A stretch of 64,000 nucleotides of DNA, from the NCBI GenBank assembly GCA_964057225.1, contig OZ059895.1:7874001-7938000 (forward strand). The letters run 5' to 3'. Under the pieces are notes generated by a model. The model searched no databases. It saw only the letters and a list, made by a program, of their open reading frames with translations, and was not told the DNA's origin. Source of the DNA: Auanema rhodensis (lineage: Eukaryota; Animalia; Nematoda). Shown here piece after piece: positions 40,155-53,284 of this stretch. Within the stretch, counting starts at the first letter, position 1; each line of letters opens with the position of its first letter. Made by a program: the position numbers and the translations under genes.

Positions 40155-43100
40155 CTAAAAATTGGGATAATTGTAGTCAGTATCTATGGCTGGAGCTCGC
40201 TTATCTTGGAATAAGGTTTTGAGTTGTCTGACACTCCAGTTAATTTCTAATGGATCCATACCAATGTATTCATTGCGATCTCTCCGAGTTTTTACCGAAT
40301 ATGCCCTAAAATGCATAATCAATAATTTTTTTAAAATATAATTATAATATTACCTCTGAAGTTCCCGTTGAAGAGATGCTGGACTCTTCTGTTCGCGTTG
40401 AGATGATGATCGTTGCAACTCAACTCGTTTAGGTGATTCAGAATTATCTTCGTTGACATCTCGACGTGATGTTTTCAAACTGCCATAGTCAGTAGCAGGC
40501 TCAATACAGTATGGTGAAAATTTTTCGGTGATAAGAATTGGTAGATTCTTATCGCAATCTTCTTGTAATTTTGGTGAAGCAATAGATGTGCATGTGGTAT
40601 TTGTAACCGGCGGTAATACAACTGGAGTTGGTGGCACATAGCTCTGAAAAATATAAATATAAGTTAGTGCATGATATAAGATTCATTTGAATTACCTTAC
40701 GTACAAAACGAGGAGATTCTACTTCAACTTCATCAACTTGTCTCTCTCGTAGCTGTGCTAGGCGTTCTGAGATAGATGGTGAAGCAGGTACAACAGTGGG
40801 GACAGTTTGAATAACGGAATCACGTGATGTATTCTGCCATAACATACTATCCTTGTTCATAAATGGATGAACTTGAACAGTTGGCTTAACGTCACGAACA
40901 TGATCACGTCGTTCTATACGAGGCGAAGAAGGAATTTCCGGTTTCTGAAATAAAAAATATATTAAGATAGATGTCTTGAAGAGGATTACATACAATATCA
41001 TTCAGCGATGTAGTGGTACTTCGGAAAGCTGGAAATCGGTTAATTGAACTAGATGTGCTTGTTGCTGTTGCTGTGGGTATTGCAACATTCGCCAAATTTT
41101 GTCGTTGTTGCTGCTCTAGATCTATCGTTTGAGTTGCTTCTTCTTTTGATTCCTTTCGTAGAATTGCGGGAACTCCCGTCTCGCTTTGCTCAATAGCAGC
41201 AACTGCACTACTTACGCGACGTCCATTAGCCATCGATACCTCTGATTCTCGTGGACTGGTTTCAGAATACATTGGTCGAGCAGATGGATTGGACGAAGTA
41301 GCCAGACTTCCAAGTCCATATCCATTAGATTGCTTGGAGGCATTACGTAATTGGGCCTCCTGAGTACGTTGGAAGTGAATTCGTTTTAAGCAAGGTGATC
41401 TCGGTGTATCACCGGAACGTCGTTCTTCCATCTTTGCCATTGACTCTTTGGCTGCTTCTTTAACGTTTACGTCTGTTGTCTGTTTTTTCAATAATAACAT
41501 CTTCAGAGCATCATTGAGATTTTCTTCTTTTTCTTCATCAAAATCATCATCTGAGTCAGAAATCATTGCTGAAGAAGATGTATGTCTGTATTCAGATGAC
41601 ATACTACTCATGGCTGCTTGGTGTGCTATGCATGTTGAAGAACTAAAGGGAGAAATAGCAGACGTTGTAGGTTTGCTTGCATATGAATACTGACTAGAAG
41701 ATGCCACAGAGGATAACGAATACGATGCTGACGAGCTGAGGCTACCGGGAGTCAACGACGAAGTAGAAGCTACAGCAGCTGTTGGAAGTTCACTAGATCC
41801 CGACGATGATAAGCTAGGAATCCGATTAGAAGACGGTGCATGGGCTACAGAATTAACAGAAATTGAATCCGATAAGCTAGATTGAGAAAGAGCATCAGCT
41901 TCTTCACCATCAATTTCTTCAATAATTGGTGTTTTTTGTGATACAGCATCATCATCAGAACATATTGATGGATTAGTAACAACATTAGAATTATGATCAA
42001 CCTATAATTTTTGAAATTATATTATTAAAACAAATATAAAATTATACAGTTTGAAGGATGGAAAAAACACAATCAGAGTTGAAGCCTGGAACAACTTCCC
42101 CTGCATAATTAATTAGAAATTCGACTAGCAAAGGTATTTTCTTTCCTCCTTCGATTTGATCTGAAATATATAGTTGTTTAGTTTAATAAAATGTCTAAAC
42201 AGTTACAGTATTTGAAATTACGTGAACTTTACGTGATTCAAATATTTTTTTTTTTTTAAATTAAAAAGATTGGTTGTATCTTAATATATAATTAATATTT
42301 AAAATATCTATCTAACTATATGTATGTCTATATATATAATATATAATATATATATGTTTATATCCCTTTTTTGACATGATAATTTGATAAGTTGAGAAGA
42401 TAATAATTAAGATATAAGAGAAAAGATATACTATATATGACCTGATTATATGATTCAATATCTTTTACAAGAAACATTAGTATATGTTTCTCTTTTATTA
42501 ATTATTATTAATAATAATATTAATTATTAATTATTATATCATATAAATTATATATTTTTTTATTTTTAATATTATATTTAATAATAATATATATAGATAT
42601 GTATATATATAGTTAGCATGTACCTGATGATTCTAAGAATGAAGGCCCCAAACAAACAGAGAGAGCTGATGCTGTCATCTTAGATGTTGCAGATGCAGAA
42701 ATCTTAGCCAATAGCTTAAGAACATTTGATAATAACATTAAATGAGGTGAAGGTAGGAGAGAAAGAAGATTTCTTGTTGATGTTATCTGAAAGAAATTTT
42801 TGTTTTTGAAATTAAAATATTTTTTTCAAAACCTTTTTGTTAAGATCTTCTTCATTAACAACTTCTTTCATCCACATATCATAATTGCTACTTTGAAGTA
42901 TTTTACCAGGTATACTTCGTAAATATTCCTAAAACGATTTCAATATTATCTTAAAGTTTTAATGATTATACCTTTAACATAGAAGCTAAAACATGAGTGC
43001 TGTACTTATTAAGATCTGGTACAAGACCCTTCTCCAATTCAGTTCGAAGTTCTTTAAATGTACTCTGTTTTGGTGATTTTCTTAAGAAAATAGTTTATAG

Positions 43101-44311
43101 TTAGCAAAATTAAAAATTTTGATTGAAAACCTAAATATGCCTTCAGTGTCGCATCCAAAAATTTTCAAATGATCCACAATCGTCATGATTGTCTGAGGTG
43201 GTGTAGCTGCATCAAGTTCCTTACCTAAAAGGCTTCGAGAATCCATCCGATGAAGAACTTTCTTTCTGTGAAAAAAAAAGATTTATTCAACAAGAACGAA
43301 CATTGAGAATTTCAAAAAGACGTAGCAGAAAGTAACCAACTTGATGCTATTGACAAACTGCATTGGTGTTGACGTTTTTGTTGATTTCATTGTGGACAGT
43401 ATAAGACGACAGTTCAACATTGGAAATGTATCCAAAGCCTGTTTTTGACTTTCAGAAATTCTAGAACATTACTTTCAATCAACGATGAACAGATGTATTT
43501 CCTTACCGAACTCCTGTTTTACGAATTTCATGCATGATAACAGCATACACATTTTCCGGTCCCTGTAGACTTTTGCCGGACGAATCTCCGACAACCAACT
43601 TCAGCTCATACGATGTATTGGGAAGAGCAAGATCATTAGCCGTTTCCACCACAAGCTCTCCACTTTTTTTACCATTATCAATACGGCGACGAATGATCTA
43701 ATTTCAAAGAAAAAAATAAGAAAAACGTTACTTCCATCATGAACTTACTTGTTTTCTTCCCCGTACATTAATATCCATTGATATCATTGTAAACAGAGGT
43801 TTTAAATTTTGTTGAATGTAAAAGCCTAATAGCTCGAACCATTCTTCTTTTTCTTCATTTGTTCTTAATGTTATATACGTATAATATATATAATTTATTC
43901 AACAAATTTGTTTACCGAAAATGAAGCAAATAGTTTGTCATTGGCCACCCAATTAAGAAAGAATCAACTGTATTCGAAGATGCAACCCATACATCAGATA
44001 GTCGAAGTTTCTCTTTTAGTTTAAATGAGCCAGGTCCTCTAAAAAAAATTGAAAAAAATGAATTTTCAGATTAAACTGAAGAGATAATTTACTTTTGTTT
44101 TGATACAAACAGTGTATCCTGATAGAGAAAGTAATAACGATGAAAACTTAAAAGAGTTGAGAGTGATGTCATCTGGACAGGACCCTCTTTTAGAGGTTTC
44201 TTACCATTATTAGATACACCTTCCTAAAAAGGTAATACATTTATAATTATAATAATAAATTAAAAACAATACATTGTCTATATTAAGACTTGTAGATGAT
44301 GATAAACTCAT
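40155..44311 (-). CDS. rga-2: RhoGAP with N-terminal PH-like and Ras-association domains and long S/T-rich tail (ARHGAP20/RGA-2-like)
   Basis: PH-like EGPVQM..HRYYFLYQDTLFVSKQK..FKLKEKLRLSDVWV..SFLIGWPMTNYLLHF, then an RA-like segment. GAP: GCDTEGIFRKSP (arginine finger), LASMLKEYLRSIPG, SKMTASALSVCLGPSFL. Ends INWSVRQLKTLFQ...YPNF*. Symbol assigned from recalled architecture; further 5' exons are possible. Confidence 0.85.
42203..42633. repeat. Inverted duplication copy A (fills most of RhoGAP intron 42161-42623 plus 10 nt of exon)
   Basis: Reverse complement matches 49844-50262 along its whole length, differing mainly in TA and homopolymer tract lengths. Confidence 0.97.
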
Positions 44312-47300
44312 TATGAGAGTTAAGAAATATGGAGCAGATGAAGCTCAAACTGAGCTGATGTTCTAGATACTTAGGTTCAGAGTATAAATCTATAATATGT
44401 ATACATAAATATATAAATTATAATAAAAATTAATAATTATATAGACAAAATAAAGAAAACAAATTTCAAAAAAACAAAAAATTATCTGAGAAATAATATA
44501 ATATTTCACATATAATTACTAATATTGAAATATTAACTAGTTGTATTTCAAGAAATACATATGTGAAATATAGTTGAATAGAATAATGTAGAAATATGAA
44601 TCTGTTCTTGTACTTATAGGAATATCTATATATGAAGTTAGAAATTGAATAGATGAATAACATTATAAGTTGAAGAAGAACAGATGATGACGACAACGTT
44701 GACGACGACGACAACGATTATGATGATGATGATGATGATGATGGCGACATCACTTTCACCATAAAATACTTTCACATCTGGCTGAAGTAGTGGTCAGAAC
44801 CTTGTTTACCCGTAGGTACGACGATGACAACGACATCGACAACGACGAAGACGGTATTGGCCAATTGAGACAGAAGACGGGAGAGAGGAACGGATTCGGA
44901 AACGTCAAATATATGTTGAAAATAGTGCATTGCTACCGGAGGGAGAGATAGAACAAGAGAACAGTAACGCCCAGTTACTATTCAGAATCCGACACATCGT
45001 TTCTTTCATTAGAAAGAGATATTTTAGAAATTGAAGAGAGAATGAATGAGATAGTATAAGAGATCGAGATAGGACGAGAGTTGAAGAGAGAAAGAGGTAA
45101 AGATGACAAGAGATGGAAAAGACCAGAATTATGTAATCGAGGAAAAGAGAGTGAGCGAACTTTGGAAGGCTAGATTTACGGGCGAGGGTAGTAGGGACAA
45201 CTGACCAGAGCGTTGAACGAAATGTCGACAAAGACAGCAACAGTGAGAAGCAGATGAGGACAAATATGGGATTGACCGAATCGAATGATGAGGAACTAGA
45301 AGAATACTATGGCTCCATGGATGACGATAAAACAACGACAACGAATACGATGATGACAATGACGTCTACAACGAAAGTGATGCGATACCTAAGACGACGA
45401 AGACGACGACGGAAGACTAGGAAGATGAATAAGGTGATGAGGATGAAAATGAAGACAATGGTACGACTGACTGACTAACAGAATAGCAAATAAATCGTTG
45501 TAGCCATTTGAAGAGCAGTCTCAAGAAGCTGATGGTGGTGTCGCTGTTTCTGCTGTTTGTTTCGCACCATCTTGATTCCTCTATCTTAATCTGTTTGACT
45601 CTTCATCCTTTTTTTGCCCTTTCACATGCTTTTAGTTGAAAAGCAAAGTAGATATAGAGAATATGACAGAGAGGAGATAACTGATATTTTCAATTTCCAA
45701 ATGGATCATATGATGTAATTACGTAAACTGTTATATATCATGTTTAAAGTTTACGTGAGTCGCAGGTTTATTTGAAACAAGTTAAATTTTTTTGCGTCAA
45801 ATGAGAGAGAGAGAGAAGGAGAGAGAGAGAGAGGGAGAGAGAAAGTGAAGGAGAAAGAGTGAAAAGGAGAGGAGGGTAAGCAGGTGATAGAGGTGAGGGA
45901 ACCCATACACGAATATGAATAGAAATGAGCTAATGTATACACGAGAAAAGTAAAACTATTTGTTGAATATTAACGAAATCTGATACAGTGAATAGGTAGT
46001 AGCTAATCTAGTTTGTATGAATAACCGTAAAAGGCTGAGTAGCTTAAGAAGTTAGATTGGAAAGGAGTTTGAGAAGGAGAGGAAGAGAGTTTATTAGTTT
46101 AGGTAAGTGAATCGAATACGGCTTAACGATCTAAGTTAACAGCTGAGACTTGTTGCCTGTCTGTCAGTAATATATATGCAAATAAGGTGTTTATTCGTCA
46201 GTCGAAGCTCGGCAGAAATATAAAGATAGAGAGATAGATGAAGGAAGAGGTGTGAGGAAATGAGAGAAATAGAGATAATGGTATAAGTGAGAAAGAGGAA
46301 TAAAACGAGTAAAAGACAGCTAGATAGGTAATGAAGCAACGATATAGTATATATAAACTATAAATCAACACGAAATTTGTCAAAAATATATACATTTGCC
46401 CTGTTTAATAATATATAATATGTATATATAACTCGAAAAGATTCTAACATGAACGATAGAACAACAAGAATGAAGAGAATAAGGTAATATGCTATAGTTG
46501 GAGAGCACGACGGATAGAGAGAATATAGCGAACCTTCAAGGACACTCCTGAACAGAGGTCGGTTGGTTCCGTACGGATTGTGCGTTGTATGGCGACAATG
46601 CCTAAGGGAAGATAAGCGAACACCAAAACGAGAAGATATGTACGTAAGGAAATTTGCAGGACGATGAGTGTGCGATAGAGGAAGAAAACAAGAGAGAAAG
46701 AGTGAAAGAGGGAGAATTAGAAAAAGGTTGAAGAGATTGAGAGAGAAAGGATGGATCAAAGAAGGTAAGAGGAATAGAGGTTTCGTCTTTTCATTCTAAT
46801 ACTTATACATATGGTTTAGAATGATGAAGAGATTTTTCGGATTCGGAACAGAAAATGAGGAAAATTGGATTAAGGTTGAGATGGAGGATTTGAGAAATAT
46901 GATGATTTCGTGAAGATGATTAAAATTAAATTTACATTTCGAATAACATATTATATACATATATGTATATATGTAAATATTATAAACTATATACATATAT
47001 AAATAATAATAATAATAAATATTATTAAAAATATAAAATTAATAAAACATATAGTATAGCATATAATAATATTATATTTTATAATAAAAAAATATTATTT
47101 TGTTCTGATTAATAAGCAAACTATACTATATATACTAGGTTCTGTGAAATTGCCATGAAATTTGTGATGAAAAAAATTTGAAAGTAAAACGATGACAAAA
47201 CAATTGAGAAGAAGATGATCAAAGGAGGAGTTAAGGAGGAGAAAATGAATTGAATGGACAATGACTGGCTGTGAATGAGGCCGGAAATCTAAATCTGTCC

Positions 47301-49843
47301 CAATTGCTCTTGAAGCGAAAAACGAAAAAAGGTGCTTTAAGCCGATTTTAGCTTGCACTCGAAAGATTATCTGACCATGCGGTGGACGAGACGGTCTGTT
47401 GATTAGGAAACAAAAAGTTTTCTTCTTCATAAAAGAAGAAGGAAAGAAAAAGAAAACTAATAAAATATAGAAGATTATGAAAAAGAAAAAGAAGAATTAT
47501 TAAAAGAAAAACAACAAAATATTTGAATATATATATATATATTTGATTGAATATTACATATTTAATATTTTATTATATTAAATAGTATATATAATCTATA
47601 AAAAAGTTTTGAAATTATAGAGATATTAGAGATAAAAATTAAATAAAACTTAAAAGAAAGTAACAGAGAGATATATGTATAGAGAGAGAGAGTTAAATGA
47701 TGTATTTGAAACAGTTATAATGGTTTTGAAAAATAGGTCAAAGATGAAAAGAAACTCACATACACATACATGTACATCGTGTAAAGTTCAAGTAATAAGT
47801 TTTAATCGAAATTTACTAATTAACTATAAGATATAATAATAAAAATAATTTAAGAATATTTATATTAATTTTATAAATTTAAAAAGAATTAAATATTATG
47901 AGAAAAAGTATAAATTATGATGTGAACTAGGTCAATATTTGAATCATTTCATATTAATTCCGCACAAAAAAATAATTTTAATGAATTCTCGTGTAGAGAG
48001 AGAGAAAAAGAGAGAGAGAGAGAGAAAGAGAGAAGAGAGAGAGGAGAATAAAGTATTGAAAGTATTGAAATGTAGGAAAATGAAAAAAGACAGAATGATT
48101 AAAAGAGAATATATAAATTTTAAAAAAAGAAATTTAGTATTATCACATAAAAATATTTTTTAAATAAAATAATAATAAAAGAAAACTGATGCTTTTAAAT
48201 TACAAATTTATATTTTACATGAGTAAAAGAGAACAGGATGAGTAGTGAAGGTGATCTAGAGCAATGAGGAATGACCGATAGCATGAGATAGAGAGGTGGT
48301 AAGAGGTAGAGACTATTGGTGATCTCGTCGTGCGCAAAGGTATAAACATATCCATGTAGGGTCATTCATAACTTTTCGTTTTCGGATTCGAGCGAATCCG
48401 CCTGACCTTATCTAGGATATCTCATCTGTCTTATATGTGTTATATGTTATGAAATCATGTTACATGAAATATTTTTTTTCTTAATCTTCTTCAATTTGAT
48501 TTTTTTTTTAAATTTTCAAAGAATTAATTGAAATAATATGTAATTAATAAAGAAAGAGAAGTATATATATATGGAGAGAGAGAAATAGAGATAGAGAGAG
48601 AGAGAGAAAAGGAAAAACATAAAGAGCTAAATAGAGAGAACCTTATATCTTAGTATTCATGGAAGATGAGCAAATAAACTGAAAAAGGAAAAAACAAGAA
48701 ACCTAAAAGTTTTTTTCGCTCCTGGTTTTAACTGTCATTAGAAGAGAGAGAAAGGGCGAAAAACAAAAGATGAATAATTCAATATAAACAAATGAATAAA
48801 CACAAAAACATGAATTGAAAAAATGAAAAAGTAAACCAATAGTTTGTTTGAACTTTTCATTGAAAACTGTGAAATACTCTTGAAAATTATTGAAAAACGA
48901 AGTTTGAAAAGGCTGAGAGTTGTAGACGTGTACAATTCTTCTTAACTTCCTTTTTTTTCTCAAATATCAAAGATTTTTTTTGAGAGGGGAGAATGAGGTA
49001 GGTTGAAAGAAAGTCAAATGCAATGCTGCTGTATAGTAAGAATCTCATCTTGAGGAACGGAATCGAAGCAGATTGTGTGGCGGCAATCAAATAACTTTTT
49101 GAAGAAAAAAAAAAGAAATTGAAGCATATGATTTATCTGGTTATGAATCCCTGTCCTCTCTCTGTTTTCCCCTCTCCCTCTTTTTCTTTTTCGTAACTTT
49201 CTTCTTTGTATTTCTCTTCTGAAGTACATCCTGTTTAGTATACGTACGTACATACATATGGAGACAATCCGCTTCAAAGCGATTAGTTGAGACGACACGA
49301 TGACGAATAGAAAAAGTGAGGAGAATTGAAGCATCTAAACAAGATAGCCTATTGAAGCTAGGTCAAGAAGGTTGTTGCTACTAAAGCTAGATTTATCGAA
49401 GATTTCATATGTTCATTATAATATTTTTTTTGTGATTGACGATACAAATTGAATATGAGATGATGATGATTGTCATAGAGTTATATGATTTTATTTCCTA
49501 TTGTCATTATTAGATTTTATAATAATGAAAGAGAAAGATAGATAAGAATTGAAAAAAAAAGAAAAAGAACTAACTTCACATAGTTAACATTGCTATTATT
49601 TTTGTATTTATATGTAAAATTATGTTATAAGTTATATATGAAGTGATAGATAATATAAAGATATATGCATATACATACTCACATATGTGATATTGATGAT
49701 GATATGTGTGCAGCAAATTCTAAGTGCCACCTACTAACTATTTCAAAAATACAGTATTATACTATTACTTTAATATATATTATATATACATAGTATATAT
49801 GTATATGTAATATAAATATAATTACTCTTTACTAGAGTATTAG

Positions 49844-50262
49844 GAATCATCAGGTACATGCTAACTATACATATATATTATTAAATATAATATTAAAAAT
49901 AAAAAAAATATATAATTTATATGATATAATAATTAATAATTAATATTATTATTAATAATAATTAATAAAAGAGAAACATATACTAATGTTTCTTGTAAAA
50001 GATATTGAATCATATAATCAGGTCATATATAGTATATCTTTTCTCTTATATCTTAATTATTATCTTCTCAACTTATCAAATTATCATGTCAAAAAAGGGA
50101 TATAAACATATATATATTATATATTATATATATAGACATACATATAGTTAGATAGATATTTTAAATATTAATTATATATTAAGATACAACCAATCTTTTT
50201 AATTTTTTTTTTAAAAAAAATATTTGAATCACGTAAAGTTCACGTAATTTCAAATACTGTAA
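49844..50262. repeat. Inverted duplication copy B (intergenic, ~300 bp downstream of the carboxylesterase stop)
   Basis: Starts GAATCATCAGGTACATGCTAACTATA and ends CACGTAATTTCAAATACTGTAA; reverse complement of 42203-42633. Confidence 0.97.
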
Positions 50263-50558: not shown

Positions 50559-53284
50559 TTAACAAAAAGGAGGAGTATATCCATCGATAGTTGGCGCTGT
50601 ACAGGCCCAAAACATTGAGTCAGTATGATAATCGAGTGATGATGTTGGATTTGGTTTCAATGATACATAGCTATATATAATTAATATATTCTGTGAATAT
50701 TATGTGAATAGCTAACCTATTACTATTACCTATACGTGGAAATGAGAATGGTAAACTGCTTCCAGATGGAGATGGATTACTGTAATTTATATAAATTATT
50801 AATTTAATATTTATAAAAATTATATTTAATAACCCAGTTTTAATGAAATTTGCCCATATATCTGAAGTTATAGTTCTTAGCTTTTCATCATCTGCATCAC
50901 ATGTCCAATAACATTCTGGAATAAAAAAGTGGAAAGATTTCAAAAAATATTACTTCAAATTTTTGTATATTATAATAAAATAAATAAATATTAATTACCT
51001 GTACTCATCAAATAAAGAAGATCCCAAGAGTGTGGTACTCCACGTAGTTGTGGTTGGGTTATTTGGGATAAAGCTGAACGAAATATAATTAAATGCTGAA
51101 ATTCTTCCAAAAAAAAAAAAAACCTCTTGGTGATAAATAATCAAATGAATACAAATACACTTTAGATCTTGTATAATCAAAGTATTTAGCATCTCTAAGT
51201 ACTGGACCAATGAAAATCATTTCGGAAAACAGCTACAACTTGTTTCAACAATGCTTAAATCTCAGATTTTAAGATGTACCTTGATGTGTTGAGCCATCCA
51301 GCCGACATTATCATCAGCAGCTATTACAGGATAATTAATATATTTATTAGCAGCAGCAGCATATACCGATTCTATTAGTGATTTTCAATTTATTAAATTT
51401 GAAAATTGAAAAAAAAATTTTAATTACTTGGATTATCCCAGTATGTCATCTCATAACTATTTTTCAGAATATTTCGTAAACCTTCTTGAGTATTAGCAGA
51501 ACTATTCAAATTTTTCATGATGTTATTAAGTTCTAAATACAATTTAATTTAAAATTTCAATGTTTAAATTTAAAAAAAATTATAATTTATCCAAAAAAAC
51601 TTGTGATTAGTGTTACTTTCATTTTATGATTACTCGCAATGCAATTGCCAAGTTTCAAGTTGAACTTACCCCAAGCTAGCCATTCATCATGTACATTACC
51701 AATAAGAACAGGTGTAGATGATCTTCGTAAAGCTAAGCTTTCTAATCTTCTAACAAAATATTTCTTATCCTATATATTTCAATTCAAAATAATTTTTTAA
51801 ATGTTATAAAACTTACCGCAACAACTGACCATTTCATACGATGATTTCGTAATTTAGAATCTTCAGATATAACTTGTGCTTGTGTTAATCCACGCAAGCA
51901 TCTAACTATTATCTATAATTAAGAATATAACATATACGTTGAATTTTGACTTGTTCACTCCATAGTCCATTTCGGAGTCCCATGATTCTTCTGTAGCACA
52001 TCCCGATGAAATAGCTAACTCAGCGCTGGTATTTCTAGTATAATCTGAATATGACATAACGGCTGACGTAAATGCTGATCCAGATTGCATAATTAGCTGT
52101 TTATATAAATCTCAAATATGTATATATTATATATTATAAATTATAATTAAATATAAACTTTTTGATTTTTCTGTCATTGATAGTAATGATACTGCTTCAG
52201 CTCCCGAACTTTGACCTCCAATTGTTACTTGTCTGGGATCACCTCCAAAGTAAGAAATCCATCTAAATTTCCAAGCCAATATTTTATCAGAAAAACAGAA
52301 AAAACTAAAATATTCTCACCTTTGAACCCAATTCAAAGCTTCAATCCAATCAGAAACTGCCCAATTTCCAGCAGCCATAGCTTCACGTGTTGAGAAGAAT
52401 CCTTAAAAATTAATTTTTTATATTATAAATTTATAAAAATTAATAAACCAAATGGTCCTAAACGATAATTAATTGAAACTAAAATGAGTCCTTTGTTAAC
52501 AAGTGTTTGGTATATTCCAGATCCAAGATCACCACTTCCTTCGGTGAATCCCCCTCCATGTATGTATACATATACAGGTAATTTTCCATTCAATGACGAA
52601 TTCTAAGATTCATAAAATGCTTCTCTATCCGAAAAATTTAGTTTAACAAACAGTTGGAGCAAAGATATTGAGATATAAACAATCTTCTTTGCCTTTTCCT
52701 GGTTGAGCACATGATGGTCCATAAGATAATGCTGACATGTTACCGTGTGGATCTTGAGATTGGGCATACTTTAATGAAAATAAATATAATTAACTTTTAA
52801 TTTATAATAACTATAAAAATATAAATAATATATATGAATGATCGATGATGATAACGATGATGATTGAATTTCTCTAGCTATTGTATATGAACTTTGAACG
52901 TTCAGAGAATTTCTCTTGAGAATTATTTAAAATAGACCTGATTTTCGACTTGTTTTCTAATCTTATCTTCTATGCTCTCTTTTAAATTTCTCTTTCAATC
53001 CTTTTCCTTCATCATTTGAAATTAAAAATAAAAACAAACGGTAAATCGAAGCGATCCAATTGGTGGAACTGCGTAAGGAATTCCACGCCAAGATTTACCG
53101 TATGAATGAGCATAACCTTAATAGTTAATATTCATTAGATTACTTATATCATATAATAATAGAAAATACCTTGTATAGTAGCTGATGTTGAACCATCATT
53201 GATGATAACATCAATCTTAGGATCATCACCCAAAACAAGGCATAATATTGAAAGAATTAGTATAATATATTTAATACTTTTCAT
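50559..53284 (-). CDS. Secreted type-B carboxylesterase (cholinesterase-like, cest family)
   Basis: Signal peptide MKSIKYIILILSILCLVLG; GIPYAVPPIGSLRF, EDCLYLNIFAP, YIHGGGF, INYRLGPFGF; nucleophile FGGDPRQVTIGGQSSGA; acid GNVHDEW; His GVPHSWDL; ends GYTPPFC*. Confidence 0.93.

Follow-up and report, generated by a model that had tools for sequence, protein, structure and literature searches.

Where new intron sequence comes from can seldom be traced. In the 64,000-nt stretch of Auanema rhodensis DNA analyzed here (the window), a RhoGAP gene carries one long intron, most of which recurs in intergenic DNA nearby, and this raises the question of how the two copies arose and which of them served as the template for the other.

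The host gene is an ARHGAP20-like PH-RhoGAP. Its exons were searched singly against domain profiles; the exon that ends at the long intron matched the RhoGAP profile above the gathering score (PF00620; E = 9e-9), and two further exons matched a PH domain of the ARHGAP20 type (PF22286; E = 4e-7). The parts of the gene that matter here are as follows:

43918..44223, minus strand: two exons, ARHGAP20-type PH domain
42624..42786, minus strand: exon, C-terminal end of the RhoGAP domain (profile positions 95 to 146 of 148)
42161..42623, minus strand: long intron, 463 nt, GT-AG, donor GTACAT, acceptor TTTCAG, phase 1
42048..42160, minus strand: next exon, phase 1 in, phase 0 out
42047..42002, minus strand: intron after that exon, 46 nt
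42001..40994, minus strand: Ser-rich exon, 336 codons

Taken together, the identities of the exons and their phases fit a functional PH-RhoGAP gene. The 463-nt intron is the sole long intron seen in the gene, compared to at least 13 short ones (43 to 72 nt). Since it is still GT-AG and in frame, the gene should remain spliceable; the exon phases are intact, in agreement with the claim of the first-pass annotation that the reading frame had been left untouched.

That annotation also described the long intron as mostly a near-identical inverted copy of positions 49844-50262, with the shared block starting inside the exon. Both statements were borne out by alignment, which defined the following features:

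42203..42633, minus strand: copy A of the block, 431 nt, made up of the final 10 nt of the RhoGAP exon and the first 421 nt of the intron
49844..50262, plus strand: copy B of the block, intergenic, 419 nt, in the orientation opposite to copy A
52130..52593, minus strand: exons of a neighboring carboxylesterase-family gene (PF00135), the 3' end of which faces copy B
42161..42206, minus strand: intron remainder without a match in copy B, 46 nt, GTAACT...TTTCAG, putative ancestral intron
42621..42633, minus strand: 13-mer GAATCATCAGGTA at the exon-intron junction, identical to 49844-49856 (plus strand), proposed entry microhomology
42203..42206, minus strand: GTAA at the right end of the block, equal to 50259-50262 in copy B, proposed return microhomology

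The two copies are ~0.42 kb long, lie in inverted orientation 7.2 kb apart, and are near-identical (99% along ~310 nt). Copy B sits past the 3' end of the carboxylesterase gene and upstream of the 5' exons of the RhoGAP gene. The left end of the block, which spans the exon-intron junction, reads GAATCATCAG/GTACATGC, and the right end reads ...AATACTGTAA. Only one substitution and four indels separate the copies, every one of them in a low-complexity tract: the indels in A-runs measure 1 nt and 5 nt, that in a TA-repeat 15 nt, and that in a T-run 7 nt, and one T-run/A-run reads T3A13 in one copy versus T10A8 in the other. The edges of the block are sharp, as alignment of the flanks past either end scored below the shuffle mean. 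A hairpin at the 3' end of the block, considered as a dissociation signal, folded no better than shuffled sequence (z = -1.2). The strand composition of the block, compared with that of neighboring introns, provided no discrimination.

Two full-length copies of the block were found in the 180.9-Mb genome, as the first-pass annotation had predicted; this count is a lower bound, yet the unique sequence of the block gave no partial matches, and the remaining genomic matches (45 to 130 nt) are TA-rich and of low complexity. Neither the RhoGAP gene nor the sequence flanking copy B has a second copy in the genome, and within the window the block is the sole young repeat (at least 60 nt long at 85% identity or more). 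The reported lack of TIRs, LTRs, and a poly-A tail was also upheld: no terminal repeats were detected in the block (terminal inverted repeat local score of 6 to 7, shuffle mean of 6.7 to 6.9), neither end carries a poly-A tail, and the only overlap at the borders is a 3-nt GTA. The block contains no ORF, and comparison with Rfam families and a tRNA search returned no match.

We conclude, at a probability of roughly 85%, that the two copies reflect one recent, one-off inverted duplication of ~0.42 kb between sites 7.2 kb apart, made without transposition machinery. The duplication appears to be young, and ectopic templated DNA synthesis is the most likely process behind it. A templated insertion should have a recognizable source elsewhere in the genome, and the ~420-nt near-identical copies provide one. 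A replication or repair strand may have changed template in an MMBIR/FoSTeS-like manner, a break may have been repaired by synthesis off a nearby ectopic template, or a fragment of local origin may have been captured at a break. The event has one end precisely at the 5' splice site of the ARHGAP20-like RhoGAP intron.

Within this one-off duplication, the two directions of copying are about equally likely. With copy B as the template, an intron of 46 nt beginning GTAACT would have grown ten-fold in one step by inverted insertion, with its donor replaced by template sequence. A 3' end, either nascent or broken, that terminated in ...GAATCATCAGGTA would have annealed to the same 13-mer on the opposite strand, 7.2 kb off; ~405 nt would then have been copied, and synthesis would have returned through GTAA, gaining the template-derived donor GTACAT. 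This sequence of steps is proposed tentatively, at somewhat under an even chance. The intron remainder at 42206-42161, which the first-pass annotation had read as a modal-size intron, is indeed a complete 46-nt GT-AG unit similar in size to neighboring introns (43 to 51 nt), and every other intron seen in the gene is likewise short. A GTA overlap at both junctions is expected from a return 3 to 4 nt behind the point of departure. With the intron as recipient, the would-be microhomologies measure 13 nt and 4 nt on a hypothetical ancestral allele; in copy A, the GTAA of the return junction falls within a short tandem ACTGTA/ACTGTT. The block is, in addition, inverted and in cis proximity, an arrangement typical of replication-based template switches under the MMBIR model.

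The entry junction is the main difficulty for copying into the intron. Because the 10 exon bases shared by the block are conserved RhoGAP coding sequence, this direction requires at least 12 to 13 nt of preexisting identity to that sequence in intergenic DNA of 17% GC. The left end of copy B, which is exon-like and GC-richer, appears out of keeping with the DNA around it. Two instances of the 13-mer GAATCATCAGGTA are present in the window, versus 0.07 expected even when one mismatch is allowed, and six in 362 Mb of strand genome-wide; the four further genomic sites lack the block. The probability of a chance match within 10 kb on either side is ~4e-4, and lower at the local composition, if the match was not itself the cause of the event. 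A microhomology of 13 nt is also unusually long for a template-switch junction, since lengths of this order form the rare tail of those reported.

Copying in the opposite direction requires no such coincidence. Here the intron would already have been ~460 nt long, and a piece of it comprising 421 intron bases together with 10 exon bases would have landed, inverted, in intergenic DNA 7.2 kb away; the exon bases would simply be part of the copied piece, the recipient site would be neutral, and the apparent 46-nt intron would be coincidental. This is possible at odds that likewise fall a little short of even. The size of the coincidence can be estimated from the intron itself: 5 of its 11 internal GTs lie in the final 75 nt, 40 to 72 nt from the acceptor, and three of these are GTA (72, 61, and 46 nt from the acceptor), so a leftover resembling a plausible short intron would arise in about 1 in 100 cases (~1%). 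Donor hexamers in the RhoGAP gene are relaxed (GTTTTG, GTATAA, and GTAATT), so GTACAT would be acceptable as a long-standing donor, and donor quality is for the same reason uninformative as a clue to polarity. However, an outward copy makes this intron the one long member among the short introns of its gene, and it leaves to chance that the block stops at a GTA(A) precisely one modal intron length from the acceptor. It also leaves the copy B junctions without demonstrable microhomology, although any would be concealed inside the shared block. The genome holds no internal comparator for the block site (homoeolog, haplotig, or paralogous empty site). For orthologous DNA, a word search with the 336-codon exon returned weak strongylid fragments only, and a metagenome scan returned no match.

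Beyond these two directions, the copies could in principle be independent insertions of a very low-copy mobile, site-specific, or introner-like element at two GAATCATCAGGTA targets. The copies have the same left 13 nt and a GTA on both sides, resembling a 3-nt target duplication. Nevertheless, we consider an element improbable, given that only two copies exist and that four 13-mer sites are empty of the block. Terminal inverted repeats, an ORF, and a known RNA are all missing, and the block brings a donor but no acceptor, unlike introners. The dispersed copies, TIRs or LTRs, poly-A tail, and target-site duplication by which transposons and introners are recognized were not found, and a transposon or introner was rejected on copy number, the lack of terminal repeats, and the empty 13-mer sites.

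An assembly or library artefact, in which one copy is not real, is more doubtful still. The copies differ only in homopolymers and microsatellites, which are also the places where errors accumulate in HiFi consensus sequence; however, an artefact would take two precise junctions and a return within 3 nt of the point of departure, and both the T3A13 versus T10A8 difference and the 15-nt indel exceed consensus noise. The DNA was unamplified and bulk, coverage is ~236x in gene-rich regions, and reads of 15 kb could span both copies, making it unlikely that the block stems from a chimera formed in amplification or from a consensus with little read support. Equally remote is an old inverted duplication held identical by recent gene conversion, since no decayed or diverged homology continues past either boundary of the identical tract (flank scores below the shuffle mean) and one of the two falls within a conserved exon. 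Intron gain by tandem duplication of an AGGT-containing exon segment was also considered and rejected, the copies being inverted and 7.2 kb apart.

Among known systems, MMBIR/FoSTeS templated insertions offer a close likeness: they involve several hundred bases copied off a nearby ectopic template, often inverted, with no transposon hallmarks and with junctions that overlap by short stretches (which, for copying into the intron, would here be 13 nt and 4 nt). They differ in that the reported microhomologies are mostly a few bases, whereas 13 nt would be unusually long and is here deduced rather than observed, and in that the present event is located at a splice donor without disrupting the gene. 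The first-pass annotation had proposed a template switch of either the MMBIR or the polymerase theta type. A 46-nt intron entered by a microhomology-primed switch is compatible with the junctions seen; the polymerase theta type, in contrast, fits poorly, because such inserts in Caenorhabditis elegans are short, are templated adjacent to the break with ~1 nt of homology, and usually accompany deletions of 50 to 200 bp (PMC4032859). Polymerase theta end joining in C. elegans is also a nematode germline repair process that yields templated insertions visible in natural variation (PMC4032859), but the block, at ~405 to 430 nt from 7.2 kb away and with no deletion, does not have the features of C. 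elegans-type TMEJ templated inserts.

If copy B was the template, the locus also resembles intron gain or growth by double-strand-break repair with filler DNA, in its added sequence and GTA border repeats (reviewed in PMC3020277; put to the test in nematodes in PMC9169325), except that an existing intron grows, none is created, and the source is still visible. Introners and intron-generating transposons are similar insofar as a repeat occupies the intron and supplies one splice site; they differ in being multicopy, with terminal repeats and target duplications, whereas the block has two copies, includes exon bases, and lacks an acceptor. A neighboring young inverted repeat of 157 nt, in another RhoGAP gene, ends in (GA)n microsatellites. 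Kinship of the block with this repeat was rejected on the difference in junction type, so the two do not establish a recurrent process.

For 168 recently gained Caenorhabditis introns, a source was found for none, and a source sequence was termed a smoking gun (PMC9169325). If copying did run from intergenic DNA into the intron, the present locus would be a rare "smoking gun" for the addition of intron sequence in a nematode, with the source visible 7.2 kb off. It would provide a concrete, transposon-free route by which an intron of modal short length becomes a long one with the gene unharmed, and would demonstrate that, along the way, intergenic DNA can provide a working donor in place of the original one. 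In either direction, a 0.42-kb inverted repeat now flanks the two thirds of the RhoGAP gene nearest its promoter. This repeat is a ready substrate for inversion and, if both arms are transcribed, double-stranded RNA could form.

The intron at 42623..42161 on the minus strand of the RhoGAP gene (463 nt, GT-AG), whose preceding exon ends in ...GAATCATCAG, carries most of a block of about 0.42 kb that also lies in intergenic DNA. The intronic segment (42203-42633, minus strand; copy A) matched the intergenic one (49844-50262, plus strand; copy B) over its full length, inverted and 7.2 kb apart. By global alignment, the copies differed by one substitution and four indels, every one in a low-complexity tract (1 nt in an A-run; 15 nt in a TA-repeat; a T3A13 versus T10A8 tract), with zero substitutions in the ~380 nt of unique sequence. 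The block edges were sharp, as the 150-nt flanks on each side aligned no better than shuffled sequence. Outside the block, the intron consisted of 46 nt (GTAACT...TTTCAG). Thus, the near-identical inverted copies and the 46-nt GT-AG remainder described in the first-pass annotation were both borne out. Within the 64-kb window, this block was the sole young repeat (at least 60 nt, at least 85% identity).

Features of the locus (window coordinates)
42203-42633, minus strand: copy A, end of a RhoGAP exon and most of the 463-nt intron
44500-49500: stretch strongly rich in purines on the plus strand, separating copy B from the RhoGAP 5' exons
49844-50262, plus strand: copy B, intergenic
50560-52700, minus strand: carboxylesterase-family gene (PF00135) with short introns, last coding exon ~0.3 kb from copy B

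Copy B is flanked by the carboxylesterase-family gene, on the 3' side of that gene, and by the 5-kb purine-rich tract that precedes the RhoGAP gene. This tract had a GC skew of up to +0.46, an AT skew of about +0.2 and many (GA)n-like runs, and no convincing coding exons were seen in it. When RhoGAP gene exons were searched singly, the exon directly before the intron (42786..42624, minus strand) matched the RhoGAP domain at its C-terminal end, over profile positions 95-146 of 148 (E = 9e-9), and upstream exons matched an ARHGAP20-type PH domain. Exon phases agreed across the long intron, with one base carried over (G+AT), consistent with the earlier claim that the reading frame was untouched. 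All other definable introns of the gene were 43-72 nt. A word search with a 336-codon exon returned weak strongylid fragments only, and a metagenome scan found no relative.

The 13-mer at the left end of the block, GAATCATCAGGTA, spans the exon-intron junction and occurs six times in the genome, copies A and B included; it stands without the block at the four other sites (C4:18315672, C6:13456095, C7:6194013 and C7:8541178). Near the 3' end of the block, two TCACGTAA copies lie 11 nt apart (50221-50256; twin at ~42209-42244) within an 8-bp-stem palindrome, TATTTGAA...TTCAAATA, and could be a paired transcription-factor site. The fold of this hairpin was not significant against shuffles (z = -1.2) and does not discriminate the direction of copying.

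Which copy was the template is, on joint estimate, a matter of about even odds, since simple generative estimates shift up or down by an order of magnitude with the assumed steepness of the preference for long microhomology. That an intron has been caught expanding, with copy B templating an insertion into a 46-nt intron, is therefore possible (probability of roughly 0.42). The recipient would already have had the last 10 bases of the exon and GT(A), conserved coding and splice sequence, and so the template must have held the 13-mer by chance. Such a match within ±10 kb has a probability of ~4e-4, lower at the region's 17% GC, and is acceptable only if the long microhomology itself caused the switch. 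Microhomologies as long as 13 nt form the rare tail of reported template-switch junctions. In C. elegans, polymerase-theta events involve ~1 nt, and the template lies next to the break (PMC4032859). Under insertion, two return registers (GTAA or ACTGT) would be possible, because the block boundary falls within a short tandem, ACTGTA ACTGTT, at the right junction of copy A (42197-42212, minus strand). Copying in reverse, from a long intron out to the intergenic site, carries practically the same weight. The shared exon bases then require no coincidence. The sole one is the position of the block end, which falls on GTA(A) with 46 nt left to the acceptor; we put this at ~1%, since at distances of 40-72 nt from the acceptor the intron has 5 of its 11 internal GTs, and three of these are GTA. 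However, the gene would then have had one long intron against at least 13 short ones. Neither donor strength (GTACAT versus GTAACT; other donors in the gene include GTTTTG and GTATAA) nor the strand composition of the block was a guide to direction.

Whichever the direction, ectopic templated synthesis between nearby opposite-strand sites fits the anatomy, because a single event copied hundreds of bases, inverted and in cis, without transposon marks and with a 3-4-nt GTA(A) overlap. The route may have been MMBIR/FoSTeS-type template switching; alternatively, a break may have been mended by synthesis-dependent repair or by capturing a fragment. Of the template-switch (MMBIR) or polymerase-theta-like route first suggested, the anatomy fits the former; a C. 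elegans-type TMEJ insert failed its test, the template being 7.2 kb off rather than next to the break with ~1 nt homology (PMC4032859). The lack of substitutions in unique sequence indicates that the duplication is young, and the indels in low-complexity tracts may stem from later slippage or from mistakes made by the copying polymerase.

An artefact creating one copy through an amplification chimera or weak consensus is unlikely judging from published assembly data, because the 180.9-Mb assembly derives from unamplified bulk DNA with ~15-kb HiFi reads at ~236-fold coverage in gene-rich regions. A genome search found two full-length copies, as predicted, all remaining matches being short and TA-rich. 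The RhoGAP gene and the copy B flanks were single-copy, and there is therefore no homoeolog, haplotig or paralogous empty site. A transposon or introner is rejected by the count of two and by the lack of terminal inverted repeats at the block ends, which agrees with the first reading; searches of the block found no tRNA and no Rfam family (one match, E = 0.88). Conversion between old repeats fails on flank homology no better than shuffled, and tandem-duplication intron gain on copies that are inverted and 7.2 kb apart.

A second young inverted repeat lies outside the window, ~30 kb past its end, in another gene region (L041:3497-3653 and L041:9086-9242 in a nearby stretch; ~7963496-7969241 of assembly sequence C3). 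It is 157 nt long at 95% identity, with arms 5.4 kb apart and a unique core of ~105 nt that is flanked at each end, in either copy, by (GA)n microsatellites. It did not evidently arise by the same process as the RhoGAP block.

The duplication is real, clean, very recent, two-copy and inverted, and it touches a splice site. It behaves like a templated insertion or local inverted micro-duplication and belongs to that known class of structural mutation. Its likeliest effect on the RhoGAP gene would be none, because the intron retains GT-AG and frame; the inverted repeat could serve as a substrate for inversion or as a source of double-stranded RNA. Insertion from copy B would mean that an existing intron grew, in contrast to the gain of a new one. 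If that direction is true, its visible source would be notable, since a nematode survey found a source sequence for 0 of 168 gained introns (PMC9169325).
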